A stretch of DNA of 64,000 nt from Botryllus schlosseri (lineage: Eukaryota). The stretch spans positions 5,208,001-5,272,000 of the forward strand of contig CM119371.1 of NCBI GenBank assembly GCA_051294905.1, read 5' to 3'. Below are positions 1,771 through 60,721 of this stretch, one piece after another (the first letter of the stretch is position 1; every line of letters starts with the position of its first letter). The position numbers were made by a program, and so were the translations under genes. Below the pieces are notes generated by a model, which worked only from the letters and a program-made list of their open reading frames with translations, was not told where the DNA came from and did no database searches.

Positions 1771-4131
1771 CAGCGGTTCTCAACCGGGGGTCCGCGAAGG
1801 ATTTTCAGGGGGTCCGCGAAGCCTCCGAATTTGAAACATGATAGTTAAGCTAATTTGATATTTCTAAGCGAAGTTAGAAAATATCTATATATGTATTTGC
1901 TTTATGACAGCTAAAACGTTAGGGCGCACGTCTGCAGAATGATGTTTGTGATAGAATATCATGCCATGCAAACTCATTTCAACTGTCTGGAAGCGATTAA
2001 GGTCTATGGAAGGGCCTAAATTGTCGCGTCACAGAGGGCGGAAACTGTTTACGTGCTAACGGTGTCGACGTAATAGTATATTAGCCCAACAAGCATAGCT
2101 CATGATTGTTGGCAACGTTAGCAAAGAGACGTATTCGGTATGACCAAATCCAGAAAGTACTCAGAAAGCTATCTCAAAATGGGGTTTACCTCATTGATAG
2201 ATGAAGACAAAGAAAAGCCACAATGAATGTCATGCTGTCCTCAGCAATGAAGCAATGAAGCCATCAAAGCTGGAGCGTCACTTGAAGCAAAAACATCCGG
2301 AGTACATCAAAAAAGACTTGTCATTCTTTCAAACACAAGAACTATCTTTGAAGCGGCAAAAACTTGATGCTAGTGGATATTTTCATCAACAAACCACCGC
2401 ATGTGTTGAGGCGTCATTTGAAGTGGCGTTGATCATCGCTCAGCAGAAAAAGCCTCATACGATAGGTGAAACGATTGTTAAACCCTGTGCTATGAAAATG
2501 GCAAATCGCGTATTGGGCAAAAATAGCGCAGACAAAATCAATCAGGTGTCGTTGTCTAATGACACAATTAAGAGGCGCATTTCGATTATGTCAGGTGATG
2601 TCAAAAGCCAAGTAATCGATGAGATCAAAGCTTCCCCCATGTTTTCTATACAAGTTGATGAATCAACTGATGTGGCATCATGCTCTCAGCTTTTAGTTTT
2701 CGTTCGATACTTGCACATGGAAGACGTTAAAGAGGAATTTTAGTTTTGTAATGCTTTGGAAACAACAACGACGGCGCAAGATGTGATGAACAGCATTTCA
2801 AAGTTCTTTGAAGCTGAAGGATTGCAGTGGGAGAAGCTATGTGGTGTATGTACGGATGGAGCACCTGCGATGCTTGGATCCAAATCAGGTTTCCAAATGA
2901 AAGTAAAAGCCAAGTCTCCCCAAGTCAAAGGAGTACATTGCATGATACATCGGTACACCCTTGCTTGTAAGACTCTTCCATTTTTTTTGAAGAAAGTTCT
3001 TGATTCTGTCGTGAAAGTTGTCAATTTTATCAAAAAGAGCGCAACAACTTCCCGCCTATTTAAACAACTGTGCAAAGAAATGGACTCTAACCACCAGACA
3101 CTTTTATTTCACACTTCAGTACGGTGGCTCTCGAAAGGGAATGTAGTCAATCGCGTCTATGAGCTTCGAACCGAGATAAAATGGTTCTTAGAGGTGATGA
3201 ACAAAGATACTGTCAGCAACTACTTCGGCGAAGAAGCATGGTTACAGGGTCTGGCATATTTGGCTGACATAACTGAGCAGTTGAATAAGTTCAATTTGAG
3301 ACTCCAAGGACATGATACAAACATATTGCTGTTTAGAGATGTTTTGTTGGGGTTTGTAGAAAAGATCAAACTTTGGAATAGGAAAGTCAATCAGGGTAAC
3401 TTCGCAATGTTCGAAAAACTTTCTGAATTTGAAGCTGTTCATCTCAGTGCACAGATCAAGCAGGATATTAGTGAACATTTGCAGTCGCTTGAAAAAGAAT
3501 TCATGAAGTATTTTCCTGATTTATCCCAAGGAGCTGAAATCTTTCCCCGGAACCCATTTTCTCCTTTGATAGACATAACCACTATTCCAGAGGAGCTTCA
3601 AGATGAACTGCTGGATTTAAGGGCTGACTCGGCTGGTCGTGATATGTTCATTGAAAAATCACTTTCTCAATTTTGGTGCCTTATGTTACGATCATACCCA
3701 AAGGTATCGTCTGAAGCTTTACGTGTTATCGTTCCGTTTGCCTCCACCTATCTTTGCGAAAGCGGATTTTCTGCTCTTGTGCATATCAAATCGAAGGCGA
3801 GGAATCAATTAAACGTCGAAGATGATATGCGATTAGCGCTGTCCAAGACAATATCACGCATTGCAAGACTTTCTGATGATATGCAGCATCAAAAATCCCA
3901 TTAAGTCAATATGCTTTAAAACAATAAACATTTTCTACAAGCTCTATGTTATTTTTCACTTGAGAAAAGCGCAAAGATTGCAGTTAAAAGTAGCCTACAG
4001 TTAGTGTTTGCACAAGACAAACAACGTTCGCTTGATTATTGAGCAAAATTTGAACTAAAACTTCAGGGGGTCCGCGGGAGTCTGGCATTACCAAAAGGGG
4101 TCCGCGAAGGCAAAAAGGTTGAGAACCACTG
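1771..4131 (+). mobile_element. hAT DNA transposon, Buster/Charlie-type, near full length, inserted in a PLK intron
   Basis: 15-bp TIRs CAGCGGTTCTCAACC / rc CAGTGGTTCTCAACC; perfect 8-bp TSD ACCTAAAG at 1763-1770 and 4132-4139 (NNNTANNN); GGGGTCCGCG subterminal repeats; encodes a transposase. Confidence 0.97.
2140..3904 (+). pseudogene. hAT (ZBED8/SCAND3/Buster-like) transposase, disrupted
   Basis: ATG at 2140 (MTKSRKYSESYLKMGF), BED-type finger CHAVLSNEAMKPSKLERHL, DDE motifs QVDESTD / CTDGAPAM / YLCESGFS, CMIH and RWLS. Frameshift near 2225 and a single TAG at 2741-2743 (EEF*FC, expected EEFLFC). Confidence 0.95.
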
Positions 4132-5794: not shown

Positions 5795-8529
5795 GTTGCT
5801 ACTCAAGTAGAAGTAGTGATTTGAAAGTATGTAGAATGTAGGTTATCTAAGCCTAGTTTGGCAGACAAAACTGAAAAGGCAAACTAGAAGTATTCAAGTG
5901 CAAGTGGGAAAATATACTTCCTTACTGAGCAGCTAGCACTAGGGTTGTTCAAGACTATCTTTTTTCAGGATTCCGGGATTCACTTAGGGAATTGTTGTGT
6001 CGCCTAAAAATCGACACCATACTTGGCTCGATCCCAACTGGCAGATGTGAACGCACACGAGTTTAGAAATTTCGAATTCAATATGAATAAAATTGAATGA
6101 AAATTCAGATATTACTGTCCACCCACGAAATTGTTACATTGTCTAAAAGAACGATGCTTGCCCATTTTTACACACCTCCAACAGGTAGAAGCGGAGTGAT
6201 TGCACTTGAAAATGATGGATTCGCTAAAATATCCTGTCTACTTGTACCAAATTTAACTTTACTACTTGTAGTTCAATGACAGTAAGGTTAGTAGGTTACC
6301 TCTACTTGAGTAGCATCGGTAATTACTTTGACCACCTTCTAGTTCAGCTTGCAATTTGATGTAAATTTATGAAGTTACTTCTACTTGACTTGCAAATTTG
6401 ATTACTTTGATCACTTGTGCGAGGGCTTTAATATATGCTATTCTATCATACAGGACAGCAGGAACTCACCAAAGTGATTCCGTGTCCTCTGATGGAAGCC
6501 GTGACTTACATCGACTACCAAAATAACTTCACACCTACAAAAGTTTTGGCGCTGGCTTGCGATACACAGATTTTATGTTTGAAAGACTCATTTTTGAAGA
6601 CTCTACTTCAGAAGATGAATCTTGATACGCTCAATACAACGAGCAATACATCTGTATCTATTTTCTACATATTTAATCATCTAAGCTTTCAATTCACTCT
6701 GTTTGAGCTTGGAGGGAATAAATGAATGAATCCATAATAGGAATGTATTGTTTGTTTCCATATTCCAACTCTTGTAAACCGAGCTGATAGTATTTATCGA
6801 ATTAGATGTGTCGGATTGAATTTCTGCAATAGGCTTTTTTCGGCGTTACAGTTTTGATGCGTGCAGGGGTGGTCAAAAGTAGTCTAATCTTTTTACTCGA
6901 TTTGCAGTAGAAGTCAAAGTCACGAGGTAAATTTCCGCTAAATCACGAGTAGACTTAGCGATTGTGGAGACATTTCAAAACTACTAGCCACTAGCGGGAG
7001 CAGATCATGAGAGACCTGAAAAGTACTCCAGTAATTACTGTATATTGAAAAAGTTGATTTGGCTGAGGTGTACTACAAGCAGTTAATCTCAGGAGTCTAT
7101 TTTCAAATGACGACATTAGGGATAGTTTCAATATTTGAAAGATATTCCGTTACCGTGATACAGGTATTTTGTCCAGTTTACATGACAATTTCACTCGTAA
7201 AAGGGATACAAACTTATCCTAAATCATGTTATATTTTACAAAATACAAAGTGTAACTAGTGTTGCTGAAAAAACTTTTGAGTAGCCCAGTAGTGAAAAGA
7301 CCTAGCCAGTAGAGTAAGTCAGATTGAGAACGCCGAAAAGTAAAAGTAGGCTGCTTTGCTACTGACAAGCTCTGAAGATGTAGGGGTGGCTGTTGGAAAA
7401 AGATTAAGAAAGTGTAATTTGTTGAGACAAAGTCTCCATTCACCCATGCTGTCTATGCCGCCGTTAGAAGGTGCCAATGGTCGACAGCTAGTGTCATGTT
7501 TCTGATGTATTCTGGGATTTTTGAGTTGCCTGAGAGACAATTTGGCAATTAAAATGAGATTGCGCATTAGGATATTTCATCTCAGACGGCCATTATGTCG
7601 ATGTGAGTCATGAAGTTGTAAGAGTAATAAAGCGAAACTGTCTTGTAATAATCAATCATTTTGCAAGTGTAGAGGCTTCGCGGACCCGCGGTTGAGAACC
7701 GCTGAACTAGGTTCTTTCTAAGCAGTTAATGGGTGTGACGGAGGTGTGTCTGTCTCTGCAGCCAGTGCCGGGCTGCCGGCTGGCAAAATCGATATGCGGC
7801 ACTTCCGAAAGCGCGCGTGTAGTAATAACATTAGCGCAGATACTGTTGCAGACATATTGAATATTATGGTCGGGCTCTTCCAGATAACTTAGGGTGGTAT
7901 GTTTTACATTACGATAATAATGCCATGTAGCATTCAAGCTGTCAGGATTCCAGAATCTCGTCTATGAAATTTGTATGTTGTAACGACTCTTGCCTTACAC
8001 TGATAGCTAATTGGTTGAGTTCCCCCCCGACCTAAGATTGTGTTTCAGGCACGCCTGGAGAAAGAGCAAGCTTATACAAACCACCAATCCAGTTAGTTAC
8101 CGTTTAACTAGTTGCTGTTTATTTGAGTAGTTCTAGTTGTCCTGTATGTAATTGGTGTCCTGGTCACACAATTCTTTATTTTTTTAGTTTTAATAAATCA
8201 CTGTAACTTGGAGAATCATCGCGACTCACCTAGGCAAAACCTACCGAGATTTCAGTAGGGCTAGTTGTAGTTGCGCATTTTAAAAAGTGATAAGTTCTAT
8301 TTGTGCATTTCTAAGCTTGGTCACAAAATCCTAGTTCTTGACAGCATTGAAATAATATAAATGTGCAGTTGTTGTCGGTCAAGTAACATTTCGTGGGTCT
8401 AGTCTACTTTCTTATCCATAACAACATGACCATCACCAATCAGAGTTCCCCCATGAACATATCTGAATTTATGGCGTTTATAATTGAATTAGGGTTGGGG
8501 TATCAATGTAACGTAGGAACATTCTGTTG

Positions 8530-8900
8530 TACTCTTACTCCCAACCCTAATCCTATGACACCCCAACCTAATTATCATTACGGTACTAACAACCCACTTT
8601 AAACCTCATCCGAACCCTAATATCATGGTCTCCAGCCTAGCCTTTCAATACCCTAACCTACCCACAACTCTAATTTCAAGATACCCTACTTTTACTACCG
8701 AGCGAGATAGTGATGACCTCATGGGGCCGTATCGCAACTCCGTCGCCAAACCATCTCGATGGTGCAGGCGAGAAAGAATATCATATCTCTCTCTCTCTAC
8801 TACCCTAACCTAATCCTAAACTCCAACCCTAATCTTATGCGACTCCAGCCTAACCCTTACCCCAACCCTAATTTTATGACTCAAACTAATCCCTAATCAA
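8530..8900. repeat. Degenerate CCCTAA-rich (telomere-like) low-complexity tract
   Basis: Seven exact CCCTAA (8545, 8615, 8651, 8803, 8827, 8866, 8891) plus many variants, not in tandem. Confidence 0.6.
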
Positions 8901-9663
8901 TTATAAACACAATAAATTTGGCAACATTGTCATAGAATGAATATCCAGTGAAATCTTCAAAATATCATATATGATACAAACTGATTATATGTTGTGACAT
9001 ACAGTTTGTATTCTAGTAGCCTACTCGTACCCGTACCATCTTCTGCTGGATCATTTTTTGAATTTGTTTTTGTATTTTCTCAATGACGCAGTGTACGGTG
9101 TGATAAAATCTTGCAGTTTAGTCCTGCCATCTTTTGTAGCAAGTGCTGGGATCGATTCAATACCTTCGAGTCCTTTCCTGTAGATAACAACACGACTGTC
9201 ACCAATCGGTGTTCCCCACGAACATGTCGAAATTTATGGCTTTTATAATTGGTTCAGGGCAGACTTCAACTTTGAGCTGTTCTATTTTAGCTTAGCATCA
9301 GAATTATTGTGACATTATACATTGTTTTCAAATCTCATTGATGAAGTATTCCCCATTATATTGATAGTTTTGTCTGTTGTTCTCCATTCTGTTATGATAA
9401 TTGCTCTGTCTACAATCTTGTAATGCTGCTTGTTTAAAATAGTTCTACACTTCATGCATTGCAGATGTAGCCATACTATAATTGAACCAAGTTTATATGC
9501 TGAAATACCAAAGATCTGTGGCTGTGGGTCTTTTCTCTAGTGTCATAAAGAAAAGCATTCTGTGGATCCAGTATTAACTATTGGTCACGACTTGACATAA
9601 CGCCAATTCGATATACCGGTATATTGGAAAGCCTTTACTGGAAATAGTAACCTCAAGCTTCAT

Positions 9664-10545
9664 TTGGATATGCACGCTGGCATCAGAAATGTTGAATGTG
9701 ATGTATGTGGTAAACTCACTCGGAAGGATACCATCAAGCGTCATATGAATATGCATACCGGCATCAAAAATCATGACTGTGATATCTGTGGGAAAGTTTT
9801 CACTGAGAAGGGTACCCTCAAGCATCATATGGATGTACATGCTGGGATAAAAAATCATATGTGTGAAATATGTGGTAATGCATTTACTCAGAAGGGTACC
9901 CTCAAGTTGCATATGGATATGCATACTGGCATCAAAAATCATGTTTGTGATATCTGTGGGAAAGCATTCACTGAGAAGGGTACCCTCAAGCATCATATGG
10001 ATGTACATGCTGGAATCAAAAATCATACATGTGCTATATGTGGTAAAACATTCTCTCAGAGGGGTCACCTCAAGCTTCATATGAATATGCATGCTGGAAG
10101 CAGAAATCATGCATGTGCTATATGTGGTAAAACATTCACTCAGAGGGGTGACCTCAAGCTTCATTTGGTTATGCATGCTGGCATTAAAAAGCATGTTTGT
10201 GATATCTGTGGGAAAGCATTCACTACGAATGGTCACCTCAAGCTTCATGTGGATATGCATGCAGGAAGCAGAAATCATACATGTGCTATATGTGGTAAAG
10301 CATTCACTCAGAAGGGTAACCTCAAGCTTCATATGGATAGGCATGCTGGGAGCAAAAATCATACATGTGCTATATGTGGTAAAGCATTCACTCAGAAGGG
10401 TAACCTCAAGCGTCATATGGATAGGCATGCTGGGAGCAAAAATCATACATGTGCTATATGTGGTAAAGCATTCACTCAGAAGGGTACCCTCAAGCTTCAT
10501 ATGGATAGGCATGCTGGGAGCAAAAGTCATACATGTGCTATATGA
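9664..10545 (+). CDS. C2H2 zinc-finger array, 10 intact fingers (5' part of the gene not found; upstream frame has stops)
   Basis: C-x2-C-x3-F-x5-L-x2-H-x3-H repeats with HTG/HAG linkers; second-Cys codons at 9706, 9787, 9871 ... 10459 (84-bp period; first interval 81 bp); ORF ends at TGA 10543. Confidence 0.85.
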   Translation: MDMHAGIRNVECDVCGKLTRKDTIKRHMNMHTGIKNHDCDICGKVFTEKGTLKHHMDVHAGIKNHMCEICGNAFTQKGTLKLHMDMHTGIKNHVCDICGKAFTEKGTLKHHMDVHAGIKNHTCAICGKTFSQRGHLKLHMNMHAGSRNHACAICGKTFTQRGDLKLHLVMHAGIKKHVCDICGKAFTTNGHLKLHVDMHAGSRNHTCAICGKAFTQKGNLKLHMDRHAGSKNHTCAICGKAFTQKGNLKRHMDRHAGSKNHTCAICGKAFTQKGTLKLHMDRHAGSKSHTCAI

Positions 10546-11406
10546 GGTAAAGCACTCACTCGGAAGGGTACCCTCACGCTTCATATGGATAGGCATGCTG
10601 GGAGCAAACATCATACATGTGCTATATGTGGTAAAGCATTCACTCAGAAGGGTACCCTCAAGCTTCATATGGATAGGCATGCTGGGAGCAAAAATCATAC
10701 ATGTGCTATATGAGGTAAAGCATTCACTCGGAAGGGTACCCTCAAGCTTCATATGGATAGGCATGCTGGGAGCAAAAATCATACATGTGCTATATGTGGT
10801 AAAGCATTCACTCAGAAGGGTACCCTCAAGCTTCATATGGATAGGCATGCTGGGAGCAAAAGTCATACATGTGCTATATGAGGTAAAGCACTCACTCGGA
10901 AGGGTACCCTCAAGCTTCATATGGATAGGCATGCTGGGAGCAAAAATCATACATGTGCTATATGAGGTAAAGCATTCACTCGGAAGGGTACCCTCAAGCT
11001 TCATATGGATAGGCATGCTGGGAGCAAAAATCATACATGTGCTATATGTGGTAAAGCATTCACTCAGAAGGGTACCCTCAAGCTTCATATGGATAGGCAT
11101 GCTGGGAGCAAAAATCATACATGTGCTATATGAGGTAAAGCATTCACTCGGAAGGGTACCCTCAAGCTTCATATGGATAGGCATGCTGGGAGCAAAAATC
11201 ATACATGTGCTATATGTGGTAAAGCATTCACTCAGAAGGGTACCCTCAAGCTTCATATGGATAGGCATGCTGGGAGCAAAAATCATACATGTGCTATATG
11301 AGGTAAAGCATTCACTCGGAAGGGTACCCTCAAGCAAAATATGGCTATGCATGCTGGCACCAAGATTCATATTGTGATATACGGTACCGTAATTTCTCAT
11401 GTATAA
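10546..11406 (+). repeat. Homogenised 84-bp zinc-finger minisatellite, 10 further fingers, 6 with in-frame TGA
   Basis: Second-Cys codon is TGA at 10543, 10711, 10879, 10963, 11131, 11299 and TGT at 10627, 10795, 11047, 11215; frame closes with TAA at 11404-11406. Confidence 0.95.
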
Positions 11407-12121
11407 TACGCCCCGCGAGACTTGCGACATGGTAATCCTTCTTCATACTGGCAAAAAAAATCATAAATGTCAAGCTTTCTGAAACCGCCAACATCAAGCA
11501 CGTGGATTGAAGTGTCGAGTTCTAAAGTCACGCAAGGTCTTGATCAAGTAATTCGAGCCGTGCATGATGCAGCCACTTTAGAATTGTTTCACTGCTAGCA
11601 GTGTCAAGTGATTGCCCTTGAGAGCGAACGTATCACTACATTTCTCTGGCTTTCATACTGTATGAGCCAACATATTTTCCATGTACACTTTATGATAGTC
11701 ATGCAACATATTGTATTAACACTGGGCAATACAAAAGCGACAAGTATTGTTCTACATTTTTTGAGTATTGATGTACATTTGTTGACAAGCGTTTACATTT
11801 CTTCAATATCCTTGTGATCGGTTTTCGTTTGTGTGATGATCTTGCAGCCATTACTAGCTAGTAATTGCTTAGTTAGTCCTGAATAGTGGTAGTTCTGTCT
11901 GTCTGATTCTTCAGTCATTTTGTACCGATGGTCATGTGGATAGCCAATCTGATTCCTATAAAATATAATGATTGGGCTGCTTCGGAATCAAATCTGGTAG
12001 TTGTGTTTCGTTTGTTATTGATTTTCAAATGTCATTAGTGATTTAGTTGTGCAGTTTAAACATTCAGTAGTTTGTATAAGTCTGGTGCCAGCTTGTTTAT
12101 GTACGATATTTCATTTTGCAG

Positions 12122-14898
12122 ATTGATTCAATAGATTATATCTGAAAAAGTATACCTTGCGACGAAAGAGATCTCTGAATTCATGTGTGATGACTCTACT
12201 TGGAACCATACAGGAGAGATCCATTTCTTGGCAAAGGCGGATTTGCCAAATGCATTATACTTGTTGACACTATAGAATCTGTGTTACTGATTCTATTTGT
12301 CACATTCACTAATGCCATTTTGTAAAGACTCTAGTGAAAACAAATGTGGCCAAGAACTTGCAAGTTGCCATTTCTGTATGCTTATTATAACTAGAGCTGG
12401 GTTGATTTAGGGATTTTGAGGCAATACCGATGAAACTGAAACCAAACACCTTCGCCGATAACCTCGATGTTTTTTAGATTAGGCCACATTTTCACAAATA
12501 TAACAGCTTCACAGTCATTGCTATGCCTAGAACGTACATGAAATAAACTAGAAAGGCTGCATCTGGACACCTGTAAGATATAAGAAGCCTATCAATATTT
12601 CCAGTGTAGCAGTCGCACAGTATTTTGTGACTACGGCATGGCCACGCTGAAATTATTTATATATTAGCCTCTCATGGACGATACCAGTCTATCTTCCAAA
12701 GTGTGATATCGATACGGTGTTGTTAGCAAACCTGATGGGCCTGGCAGTAAATGCGAGCATTAATTTAGTGTTCATTTTAGGCACTTCTTGTGAATAAGCA
12801 TCATAAAGACGAAATGTGTCAAGAGACCAGTCTCCATCGCGGTTTGCTCGATTTTATGGATTTTTCAAACTCAAGAATTTCTTCCATATTGCTCTGTAGT
12901 TGTGCAAAAGAAGCGTAAAGCATTTCTTTGATACAGCTGTAATGTGTCTCAAACTGTTATGTTGGCAATTGCATCAACTCCGCCACGTCCATTACTAGCC
13001 GAGTACGACGACAAATTGATATAAATTGAACTGATTTTTGGTGTCATTCTTATTTAGAATTTAGTAATTCTAGTCTACTTTATAAAAAAAATGATGTAGC
13101 CTTGATTCTAATTCCAAGCACACTTGGAAAAACACGGAAGTTTTAATTCTGATCTAAATTGAAAAAAACTTGTGTAGCTTTAATGCTACTTCTAATCCAA
13201 TTTAGAAAAAAAAACTGTGTAGATATAATTATAATTCTAAGCTAGTTTGGATAAGCTGAAGATTTTCTTGTTCGACGAATCTGATCACATGAGGGATAGG
13301 CACAATCATTCGAGTACTCGATTTGAATCGAGTATTCTATCGAATGATTTGAGTCGAGTAGTGAGTTATGTTTTTTTGAGTACTGAAACAATACGCCTCT
13401 TGTCACAATAGTCGAAATTATTACCAACAAACCTAACTGAATATAACTGAGAGTTAATTTACGACTGACAAATATGGTTTCGAATGTGTTTTCTATGGAA
13501 GGCCGTATGTAAACATCGATTGGCTGTGTTGCAGTATACGAAACATGTAGTACAAAGCTACACTCGTTAATGGAAATGACATATCTGTGAAGTCGTGACC
13601 AACCCACAGCATTGTCACAAAGTGCAATGAAATATATATTGTACCGGTATGGTGAAAATATACAAGTTATCAGTAATGTGCTGTAGAACTGGCGTGACGC
13701 TGTCTGTGGTCGCATCAAAAGTACATACTTGAACTTTTCTACTATTCCATAATGTTGTGACCTGATACTAAGTGATAATCGACTCGAAGGCTAATACTCG
13801 GTTTAGAATCGAATTACTCTGATTTCATGTCGAATATAAAAAAAGCAGCATGAAATGAACTTTCTAATTCGGAAGGTCCACCTGCCCGCTAAATTGGTTG
13901 ACAAATTGCTTGTTTCCGACTAGCACAAACAGGTTGCGAATCACTAATTAGGATGTTCTCAACAAATACCATTGTTGTTTTCATTCTATCAATTCGATAA
14001 ACTTTGACTTTTTTGTCAGTCGCAGATATAAGTTTTCAAGTTATTGCACGTCATTACAGACACTCGTTATTGCATGCAACAGATTCTGCTTGTAGTCATT
14101 CATCTTCACAAATCAGGGATCGTTCATAGGTGTATCTCAAGGTAACGTTGGTTGCAGTGTTACTGGACTTGTGCAAACTAGTAGATTTTCATTGCACAAT
14201 TAGAACTATTACTACTCACTTTTAAAAACTACTCACTTTTCAAAATTTGCAATTACATCTAGAACTACTGGCTTTACAAAATTTGCATTTCGAAATCGAA
14301 CTACAACTACCGGTACTGACTTTTCAAAACTCTGAACTAGAACTAGAATAATTCATTTAGCAACAACTAGAACTGGCGACCGTTAAATATCTGCAACTAA
14401 CTCAACTCCAAATGCGGATAATTAATGGTGAGAATAAATTAATCGCAAACAGGCTACAAAATATCAAAAGGACTGGATTTCTAGTTTAGGGGTTGCGACC
14501 CCATAACCCTCCTCATGGCTATGCCGCTGTTAGTAGTGGTGACTCTGAGCTAGGGATGGCTGCCAACACATCACACAGCAGAACATCAGCAGCACAACTT
14601 GTGTCAACTAGTTGTTCGTAAACTAATTTTATTCAATGCCCATCTGAAACTACTCATAAAGCAAGTAATTCGTCGACCATATTTTATTTATGTAACTGGA
14701 TTTGTATTGACAGCCGGAGAACCTCTTCCTGAACAACAACATGGAGGTGAAGATTGGAAATTTTGGGCTAGCTACCAAAATCTACTTTGACACGCAGAGA
14801 GAACTTTTTTGGGCCACACCCAACTATTTCGCCCCGGAAGGTCTCGGCAGGAATGGACACATTTTCGAAATGTACACTTGGTCACCAGGTTGTATTTT
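12122..14898 (+). pseudogene. PLK1: PLK1-like pseudogene copy B, kinase exons 1-4 (12122-~12275, 12781-12914, 14020-14141, 14714-14898)
   Basis: EISEFMCDD...FLGKGGFAKC; ALLVNKHHKDEMCQETSLHR...FYGFF...LCKR; TRYCMQQILL...LHKSGIVHR; ENLFLNNNMEVKIGNFGLATK...TPNYFAPEGLGRNGH...W. AG/GT boundaries; stops and frameshifts in exons 1-3. Confidence 0.92.
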
Positions 14899-16485
14899 GT
14901 GAGTATGATCCAACACTCACCTGGGAGTTACTAAAAGGGGTTGCAAGGGCCTTAGGTGTAGAGATGAGTGAAATCGAATACATCACTAGTTTGATTTTGA
15001 ATCGAGTATTAGTCTTCGACTCGAGTATTCGAGTATATCTCGTTATGACACTATAACAGTATGAACGATGTGAAAGTTGTAATATGAACCTTTTCTGCCA
15101 CCACAAACAATGTAATGCCAGTTCTACATCACATCAAAGCTAATTTTTATATTTTAACCATACCTGTACGATACTTATTTCATGCACTATGTGACAATGC
15201 AGTGGTTTGATCACGACTTCACCTAAATGTCATTTCCACTAACGCTGCACCTTTATGCTGCCTATTTCTTAAGCTGCGATACGACCAGTCGATGATTACA
15301 GCCACCCTCATTTAGAAAGTAGTAATCAAGGTATAATTCTCTTAATGAACTCTTAGTGAACCCTTAGCATAAGATCTTAGCAAAAGGTATGTTATATCTG
15401 AGACTGGGAGTTGGTATTTTGATTTTTATTCTAATGTGCTCTGCAGTGTTGGGATGGCAGAGTCAACTTTTTCAAGTGTATTGACTTAACTGGAGTCGAG
15501 TCACCTTCAAAAATGAGTGACGTTACCTGACGCAAGTCTCCTTCGCGCAATCAAATCACAATAAAAAATCTAAACTTGGACTTGCCTAAAAATTCGAGTA
15601 ACTTGACTCGATTCAAAATGTGCAGCGACTCGATATGACATGTGACTCGAACATAGTGACTCGTTTCCAACTTTTCAACTGATTCTTGACAGTATTTTGT
15701 CGTTTGACCCATCACAACGACCTACAACAAAGCAAGCATTGTCCAGTGAGTTTTCCCATGGCTGTATTCCACAACAACTACCGGTCACCTGATTGACTAT
15801 CAGGCCCAGATCATCAAGTCGACTCCAGCCGAGTTTCACAACTGAGATTTTTATACTTCTATAATATGGTTACTGCTGAGTAAAATCAAGTACCTGATTG
15901 ACTCAATTCTGGATCGAGTATTTGGCTTCGAGTTGGGTATGTGAGTATCATCGATATTGACGTCATAACATTATGATAGATGTGGAAAGTTGAACTATTC
16001 TACCGCACAAACGTAATGCCAGTTCTATATCACAATCAAGATAATTTTGTATTTTTCATTACACTTTGTGACAATGCTTTGAGGTTTGGGTTGATCACGA
16101 TTAACAGAAATGCCAACGACGTTTGCATCCTTCTACAGTGTAAAATAGTATCGAAAGGATAAATCTCGTAGTGGTCGCAGAAAAGGTAGATGTTTCAACA
16201 TTCCACATCTTACACGCTGGTGTCATGCCGTAATGGGTGATACTATATTCAAAGAATAATTCCTGATTTATAATCGAATCACTCGGGTGCCTGGGTGCTA
16301 TTATCAAAAAGGCATAATTATATGTAATTTCTAATTAGAAGGTTCACGGATATGCAAAATTGGTCGCCGAATTTGACCAGCCCGCGAGCTCAAACAGGTT
16401 GAGAAGCACAGATTCAGATGTGCCCAACAAATAATATTGGTGATTTGATTTGGGCAATCCAATTAGCTTTGATATTTTTTGTCAG

Positions 16486-17066
16486 TCTGATGGAAGTTCA
16501 CAAACTAAGGCACGTCATCACAAAACCTGAGACTCGTTATTACATGCAACAGATTCTGCTTGGAGTCGTTTATCTTCACGATTGTAATATCATTCAAATG
16601 GATATCAAGGTAAGATTGGTGGCTGTGATACCGGACATGTTCTAACTATTGGGTTTATTGAAATGTGCTACTAGTATTAGAACTGGACTTAGTCACTTTT
16701 CAGAATTTTCAACTAGAACTTCAACTAACGATCATTAAGAATCCACAACTAACTAGTTAATAAACACACGAATTACTGAATTGCAATCAACTGAGAAATA
16801 ACAACATCACACAACAGAAAAAAAGGTACCACGATTCACATGAAAGGTGTTTTCTAGTTGTCCGACAACTAAACTTTTGAAATCCGCAACTAGAACTACT
16901 AAAAAAAGCAGTGGTTTGTTTTCCATCAACTAACTAGATTGGTAATTTGTAAAAGTCTGGATGCTTGAATATCTAAATGTGGAATTTGCATTGACAGGTG
17001 TAGAATCGATTCTTTAACAACAACATGAAGATGAAGATTGGAAATCCGGTCGATGGGTTGTGTTTT
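16486..17066 (+). pseudogene. PLK1: PLK1-like exon 3 (16486-16609) and internally deleted exon 4 (16998-17066)
   Basis: LMEVHKLRHVITKPETRYYMQQILLGVVYLHDCNIIQMDIK|gtaag; NNNMKMKIGNP...MGCV|gtgagt. Confidence 0.9.
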
Positions 17067-59369: not shown

Positions 59370-60345
59370 TCACATCGATCTTGATGCATTCGATATTTCA
59401 TCTTGTATCCTTGTAAGCGTTCTTTCCGTGAGATCACCTGGGTTTGTTCTATGTCGCATACGGAGCCTTTGTTGTAGTGATGTCATTATCCATTCCGCGT
59501 CAATCGGTCGCTTCTCGTATTTATTTATGTCCCTTGCTCGCCAGACTGCCAGTTTGTAAACAGTGATCAATATTGTTAGCGTATTTTTTTTGCTCAATTG
59601 TCATTGCGGTTGCGATGTTCATGCCGAGTATTGCTTGGAAGTCACTTTTTGGCAGTCTTCTTTGCGTCACCTCTTGCCACGAATCTAAAGTGATATTGGG
59701 AGATTTTTAGTGGACTTACATGTCACAAATATAGGCTCATGCATCTCTATCTCGGTTTCGCACAAGGCGCAGTCTCTTGTTTTTGTTGCCCACTGGGTTT
59801 TTAAGCCTTCGTTGGTTCGGAGGAGTCTGTGCGCTACTTCCCAGTTGAACTGCCTCTGATGGTAAGTGATGCATGTGTGGTTGATATTTTCCCAGCTCGG
59901 TCCGATCATTTCGCCAATCTCTCTGTTGCATGTTCTTGACAGTGTGAGTTTGTAGCGTTGTTCTTGCTTTTGTTTCGAGTCGTCCTTTGCGAACTTCATG
60001 CTTTCCAGTCGTTCCTTGGTATCGTTCCAGTGACTGAGCGGCTGTGATGTATGTGGTATGGCGTTATTGATATCATGGTTTCGGTACCTTGTTAAAATGA
60101 TTGCCAGTTGGTGTTCGAGCCTTCTGTCCAAGTTGCTTTCCGGTTGTTTGTTCGCCCTTTTCAAGTACTCGACCGCCGGTTTTGTATACGCCAAGTCAGC
60201 CATTGTAATGATGTCGATGGTCCCGAGTCCTCCCTGCTCTTTGGGCAGGGTGATTTTGGTGTAATCAATCTTGGGATCTATACCGAAGAGGAATTTCGTG
60301 ATTTCGACTTTTACCCTGCTTCTGATGTTCCCGGCATTTTTGACG
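59370..60345 (-). mobile_element. L1/Tx1-clade LINE ORF2 3' fragment, 5'-truncated
   Basis: ITLPKEQGGLG, FNWEVAHRLLRTN..C.LC...E..EPIFVTC (zf-RVT) and LAVWRAR motifs; frame broken near 59685. Confidence 0.85.
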
Positions 60346-60721
60346 TCTGGGAGACATATGTGAATAAAGGAAGTACGTTGGTTCTTAATATGGCATGTCA
60401 TAAAGTATAAAGCTTTTTCTTCATAATAACAGTAATCTGTATTATACTTTTGCTATAGCGTATTGTAATCTATACTTTTGCTGAGCAGTGAGCAATCAAA
60501 TATCCACTCACACAGAGGGGAATCCCCCATCTACATTGCGGTCAATGAGCCGTAAACGAATCACACCGTCACAACAAACAGACGGCAGTTTTTTTTATCT
60601 CGGCGACCACACCGAAGATAATGTTAATAACCATGCAAGATGTGGAATAATAGATTTAATAAATCGCCAAACTGATATTAGATCAGTGGTTTTCAACCTT
60701 CACTAACATGGCGAACTTCTC

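Follow-up and report, generated by a model that had tools for sequence, protein, structure and literature searches.

Six in-frame TGA codons interrupt a zinc-finger minisatellite of Botryllus schlosseri, each of them at the second zinc-ligand cysteine (Cys2) of a C2H2 finger, and they are best explained as copies of one old nonsense mutation that was multiplied by tandem block duplication. Taken as a whole, and including the untranslated state of the 3′ part of the array, this explanation is given a probability of about 0.9. The locus shows the usual decay and turnover of a gene cluster that evolves fast, and not stop-codon recoding. The analysis covers a window of 64 kb, that is, the whole stretch of DNA that was analysed (C1:5208001-5272000 by the assembly label, where C1 is a 41.8-Mb contig of a 495-Mb genome). 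Positions are those of the window unless a contig is named, and the features discussed are collected in Table 1.

Tandem Repeats Finder describes 9647-11371 as a single array with a period of 84, 20.6 copies and 89% matches. Read in the zinc-finger frame, 9601-11403 comprises 21 C2H2 units of 84 bp with linkers of the type HAG(I/S)KNH, and this frame stays open from 9601 to a TAA at 11404 apart from the six TGAs. Dissection in the 84-bp register gives the Cys2 codons from 10543 onwards as TGA, TGT, TGA, TGT, TGA, TGA, TGT, TGA, TGT, TGA. A CGG (Arg) codon lies 17 nt 3′ of the TGA in every TGA unit, and CAG (Gln) is present in every TGT unit; by the C-X2-C-X3-F-X5-L-X2-H register, this residue corresponds to helix position −1. 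Two pairs of variant units, with AGT at 10450 and 10786 and with CTC at 10534 and 10870, mark a higher-order copy of 336 bp. On all these points, namely the series of ten codons, the lack of a further stop before 11404, the coupling of TGA with CGG and of TGT with CAG, and the 336-bp copy with its markers, the preliminary description of this DNA proved exact.

The region 9670-10542 matches the Pfam zf-C2H2 model in nine stretches (E=2.6e-58), which identifies it as a C2H2 array (PF00096/PF13465), and the fingers between the TGAs match the same model (E about 1e-9 to 1e-11). Two long open frames without fingers also cross the array, one of 618 aa (9574-11430, minus strand) and one of 428 aa (10091-11377, plus strand, other frame). 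Neither has a Pfam match, and as genes they were rejected: they arise mechanically because the repeated unit has no stop codon in either of these frames, and gene finders could be misled by them.

Table 1. Features of the zinc-finger locus, in window coordinates
Feature	Position	Strand	Basis or remark
Upstream block common to paralogues	9325..9540	+	Paralogue homology starts at ~9314-9325
Leader, probably 5′UTR	9541..9669	+	Comparison with paralogue leaders, ~130 nt
Open frame, 291 codons	9670..10545	+	From ATG in degenerate finger 0 to first TGA
Twelve near-identical 84-bp units	10282..11289	+	7 Gln/TGT (A type) and 5 Arg/TGA (B type)
First TGA, Cys2 position	10543..10545	+	Would be the effective stop of a translated ORF
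Second TGA copy	10711..10713	+	Array dissection
Third TGA copy	10879..10881	+	Array dissection
Fourth TGA copy	10963..10965	+	Array dissection
Fifth TGA copy	11131..11133	+	Array dissection
Decayed terminal finger, TGA 11299-11301	11290..11406	+	Putative founder of the TGA+CGG segment
3′ flank, probably 3′UTR	11407..12260	+	96% with L019, 81-84% with other paralogues

The origin of the TGAs is indicated by a sister locus. A genome-wide pattern search (495 Mb) found the TGA+CGG finger at seven genomic sites only, six in the window and one at C1:4652011; TGT+CGG fingers are present in other paralogues. The seventh site is the terminal finger of the paralogue L019, 570 kb from the window locus. 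The two loci are 96-96.5% identical over about 3 kb of 3′ flank and 96% identical in the leader, and L019 is a segmental duplicate of the window locus. In its array, the terminal unit has TGA and CGG, and a single Gln/TGT unit stands before it. In both loci, the terminal finger has Asn in place of His1 (...LKQNMAMH...), and one base is missing from its tail, which shifts the frame. Intact paralogues lack these terminal-finger lesions and end in ...HAGTKIHYCDIP-stop (...IHYCDIP stop). The window alone carries a 5-bp insertion in the tail (11380-11384), after which the frame stops at the TAA.

Since the TGA, the change of His1 to Asn and the 1-bp deletion are common to both loci, the TGA is older than their separation. 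The DNA 3′ of the founder TGA has decayed in the way untranslated DNA does. In addition, the TGA units of the window are identical or 1-3 nt apart, so they are copies of one event rather than the outcome of six chance events. The earlier proposal of a single TGT-to-TGA mutation, multiplied within the array behind an open frame of about ten fingers, is supported by these observations, which also place the mutation before the expansion of the array.

The passage of the mutation into internal units has left a recognizable trace. An internal TGA unit matches the terminal unit at every base of nt 1-46, and the Gln unit at every base of nt 47-84. It is thus an exact recombinant, composed of 46 nt of the dead terminal finger and 38 nt of the neighbouring Gln finger, and this chimera makes the founder segment traceable to the base. 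The linkage of TGA with CGG is perfect because both sit on one 46-nt founder segment, which bears out the use of this linkage in the preliminary description as an argument for a single mutation.

Between 10282 and 11289, the units differ pairwise at 0-7 positions per 84 nt. The TGA units at 10702, 10954 and 11122 are mutually identical, as are the TGT units at 10618, 11038 and 11206, and the array matches itself with 99-100% identity when offset by 336-420 bp. If Gln/TGT units are called A, Arg/TGA units B and the terminal unit T, with primes for units carrying the AGT, CTC, ACG or CAT variants, the units from 10450 onwards are arranged as A′B″AB A′B′B AB AT, preceded by two A-like QKGN units (10282 and 10366). 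Such an order fits duplications in 168-bp and 336-bp registers together with one 84-bp loss. The amplification is recent, because the units differ far less than the two loci do (about 3.5-4% divergence). L019 has expanded another dimer instead, QRGD/TKNGH.

These data suggest the following course of events. In the common ancestor of the window copy and L019, the Cys2 codon of the last finger would have changed from TGT to TGA. This change would have removed the final finger only, which could then decay, with His1 replaced by Asn and the tail thrown out of frame by a 1-bp deletion. Once the segment had been duplicated, a misaligned recombination in the window copy would have fused nt 1-46 of the terminal finger to nt 47-84 of the Gln finger before it, giving a 168-bp dimer of a Gln/TGT and an Arg/TGA finger. 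This dimer would then have been amplified in registers of 168 bp and 336 bp, with one 84-bp loss, to yield 12 units and six TGAs. In the present locus, the TGAs would act as ordinary stops, and the DNA past 10545 would be untranslated, either as a 3′UTR minisatellite or as part of a pseudogene. The data show the chimeric unit, a single origin and decay common to both loci. We infer the order of these steps, with unequal crossover and not gene conversion as their cause, from one haplotype, on which the exchange would have run from the terminal unit to the internal TGA units.

Comparison with paralogues also outlines the gene that precedes the first TGA. A polypyrimidine tract with TAG ends at 9540, and the acceptor-like sequence TTTTCTCTAG/TGTCAT is kept in 17 aligned copies. 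The upstream block may be a promoter or outron with a splice or trans-splice acceptor, the AG of which could be a spliced-leader trans-splice site. Paralogue homology reaches only some 220 bp beyond the 5′ end of the leader and revealed no upstream coding exon. The leader itself has a 6-bp insertion and a TAA at 9598-9600, which is specific to the window (GAA in L019). This TAA was considered as decisive proof of a pseudogene and rejected as such: stops or indels that are not multiples of three occur in 7 of the 17 paralogue leaders, including three with fully open arrays (L017, L020 and L024). The leader is much less constrained than the fingers, and broken leaders beside open arrays indicate that it is probably 5′UTR. 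This suggests a finger-only gene, with translation starting inside a degenerate finger. The gene structure as given here (transcription start, cis- or trans-splicing at the acceptor-like site at 9540/9541, and poly(A) site) is a prediction from these paralogue comparisons.

The open frame encodes one finger with a one-residue deletion (unit 9694), a loss common to the window and L019, and then nine canonical C2H2 fingers. A protein homology search with the 291-aa piece returned generic poly-ZNF proteins only, with up to 48% identity and no annotation from the same species. Over the first 360 coding nucleotides, the window and L019 differ in five non-synonymous and two synonymous codons, at a rate like that of the flanks. 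This ratio, from only seven codons, looks about neutral, and purifying selection is not evident at the locus. In L019, the loss of 1 bp from an A-run shifts the frame. A few dozen sense 10x single-cell RNA reads map to 11734-12127 and a handful inside the array; they are unassignable between the window and L019 because the loci are 96% identical there. A live gene is favoured by the ATG in frame at 9670, the nine canonical fingers of the open frame, the conservation of the upstream block and its acceptor-like site, and the sense reads; the residue missing from the first finger, the neutral-looking divergence, the frameshift in L019 and the ambiguity of the reads weigh against it. The odds that the 291-codon ORF still makes a working protein are roughly even.

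If a working protein is made, the array could have a more active part than decay. One such reading, which is improbable, holds that the gene is live and uses the inherited nonsense mutation as its working stop. Its 0.86-kb 3′UTR would be a young minisatellite of finger units, open and stop-bearing by turns, and in-register recombination between these and the coding units would reset the number of C-terminal fingers and their −1 residues (Gln or Arg) between generations. If true, this would be a natural system where a coding minisatellite and its untranslated continuation swap units.

It is also improbable that the 3′UTR units are kept as a functional reservoir, with a live gene ending at the first TGA and recombination lengthening or re-tuning its protein. 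The intact ORF with its nine canonical fingers, the sense RNA reads in the 3′ flank (few of them inside the array) and leader lesions that are probably confined to the 5′UTR would agree with such a role. A stop in the last exon would, moreover, cause no nonsense-mediated decay. However, about every second unit bears a stop. Conversion of the first TGA would gain two fingers before the TGA at 10711, and conversion of the third would gain one. Because each TGA removal exposes at most two fingers, there is no one-step unlocking of the array, and the preliminary suggestion of a hidden reservoir that one conversion event could unlock fails. Between A units, crossovers in register have no effect other than to shorten the array toward the ancestral A-T ending. 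Moreover, no sign of selection on the stored units is seen, the coding divergence from the sister looks neutral, and the RNA reads are indistinguishable from those of that 96%-identical sister, which is frameshifted. Upkeep for future use is, in addition, not directly selectable.

Could the TGA units, or their number, be an artefact of a mis-assembled 1.7-kb repeat or of systematic base errors? Tandem 84-bp units with 99-100% identity assemble poorly, and the reads do not resolve individual units. In short-read contigs from an independent sample, 63% of the stretch's words are present and the repeat is collapsed. The same TGA+CGG finger, however, stands at the independent locus L019 with different flanking variants, the AGT, CTC, ACG and CAT markers give a consistent higher-order structure, and runs from several samples and studies contain 42-74% of the stretch's 31-mers. 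An artefact is very unlikely on this evidence. The unit order given above is that of the assembly, and the TGA appears to be backed by the sister locus and by k-mer sharing as well. Among the read sets, run X9 was rejected as RNA, as it covers the flanks evenly in a DNA-like manner. Runs filed under three other organism codes (B, C and D) contain 42-62% of the stretch's 31-mers, which points to the same species relabelled, very close relatives or mixed samples.

The preliminary description had also raised UGA recoding, in which the six UGAs would be read as selenocysteine (Sec), or as Cys or by readthrough, to give a protein of about 20 fingers with Sec at a zinc-ligand site. Some points speak for it: the 860 nt past the first TGA are otherwise open, each TGA stands precisely where a Cys codon belongs, and an exchange of Sec and Cys is what classically marks selenoproteins. 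Furthermore, the genome uses Sec. Glutathione peroxidase (GPx) exons with in-frame TGA were located in it and served as the positive control for searches of the selenocysteine insertion element (SECIS). Control loci of 3 kb gave no SECIS at first, and their downstream extension gave the one match, an Rfam SECIS_1 hit on the right strand downstream of one of the four TGA-containing GPx loci (29.5 bits, E=0.03). It lies at L042 2963-3025 (minus strand; C8:16614262-16614324), about 2 kb downstream of the GPx exon and below the gathering score; the other three loci have no Rfam SECIS within 5 kb. The combination of in-frame TGA and SECIS shows that the genome has Sec-type GPx genes, and the recovery of one control in four means that the sensitivity of the Rfam search is limited. 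A genome-wide Rfam SECIS_1 search was blank in this genome and in every control genome, and hence uninformative. Our own scanner, which looks for the quartet, the AA and the helices, detected the control with a relaxed helix I, at 0.04 hits per shuffled sequence; a version with strict helix I missed the control and was discarded.

At the zinc-finger locus, Rfam gave no SECIS match, whether at E<=10 for both strands of 8500-16500 or at gathering score for the whole window, and our own scan of 10546-17000 (plus strand) gave no candidate. The 3′ region, which had been proposed for such a check, thus gives no SECIS candidate over 6.4 kb downstream with either of the two methods, each of which picks up the control. 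Two properties by which selenoprotein genes are recognized are missing, namely a SECIS in the 3′UTR and a UGA that is conserved, or aligned with Cys, under downstream purifying selection; the TGA occurs in two sister loci only. The family comprises more than 260 matching stretches, and TGA fingers are absent from the rest of it. The youth of the copies (0-7 nt apart) accounts for the open frame. Among the 12 units there are eight variable sites, each of which alters the amino acid. In both paralogues, His1 and the reading frame of the founder TGA finger are lost, so it was not translated through. UGA followed by G is an efficient context for termination, not a leaky one. Recoding is left unsupported, with no SECIS and with a founder finger decayed behind its TGA, and it is hardly credible.

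The single-mutation reading agrees well with the surroundings of the locus, which belongs to a large C2H2 family of finger-only genes in tandem clusters. A 336-bp query has its more than 260 genomic matches mostly in C1:4.1-6.5 Mb. As in birth-and-death clusters of zinc-finger genes, the paralogues are clustered and partly disabled, with stops or frameshifts inside the arrays of about 9 of 20 sampled loci, and finger-block duplications differ between close paralogues. Another paralogue, L015 (C1:4954500-4962500, plus strand), has a TAA in the linker (...DKHAGI-stop-NHACAICGKEFAEKSTPK...) twice, at about 4396 and 4732 of its array. The two copies are 336 bp apart, a four-finger block, within an otherwise open array of 20 fingers, and L015 is an independent case of a stop duplicated along with an array block. 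Similarly, L018 and L022 have two TAGs in common.

Several known systems offer parallels. In mouse KRAB zinc-finger protein (KZFP) clusters, blocks of one to seven fingers are duplicated inside zinc-finger genes and pseudogenes (PMC5363842). The present cluster resembles those clusters (PMC5363842) in its tandem paralogues, 84-bp units, block duplications, many premature stops and satellite-like grading. It differs from them in that its finger-only copies showed no effector domain, KRAB or otherwise, the linkers are HAG(I/S)KNH and not TGEKP, and the homologous unit is short, with about 220 bp upstream, one exon and about 0.85 kb downstream; in addition, the host is a tunicate and not a mammal. 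PRDM9-type minisatellites also consist of coding 84-bp units shuffled by unequal exchange, with variation at DNA contacts (here position −1, Gln or Arg). Unlike them, the array described here, known from one haplotype, has no PR/SET or KRAB domain and is interrupted by stops. The likeness to selenoproteins, including the multi-Sec SelenoP, is that several in-frame TGAs stand where homologues have Cys. In contrast to selenoproteins, the locus has no SECIS, shows decay behind the founder TGA, carries a TGA that is not conserved in the family, and has a single mutational origin.

The locus is of value mainly as a clean negative, in which a recoding look-alike, with six stops at one metal-ligand cysteine, is explained by a nonsense mutation and tandem duplication. 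It exemplifies how unequal exchange can spread a lesion in a coding minisatellite, with a dead terminal finger seeding the repeats. This calls for caution in automated screens for selenoproteins or readthrough in repeat-rich zinc-finger clusters. The process is well known; the locus adds a new example to it and opens no long-standing question.

Other features of the window were recorded as well. At 2201-3904 (plus strand), two ORFs lie side by side, one of 180 aa and one of 382 aa, both without a Pfam match. An ORF of 238 aa at 59688-60401 (minus strand) has a weak zf-RVT match (E=5.5e-5) and is probably a non-LTR retrotransposon fragment. Closer to the array, the segments 8582-8975 and 12522-12718 show DNA and RNA read depth thousands-fold above their flanks, with many loose ends, and are interspersed repeats of high copy number on either side of the zinc-finger unit.
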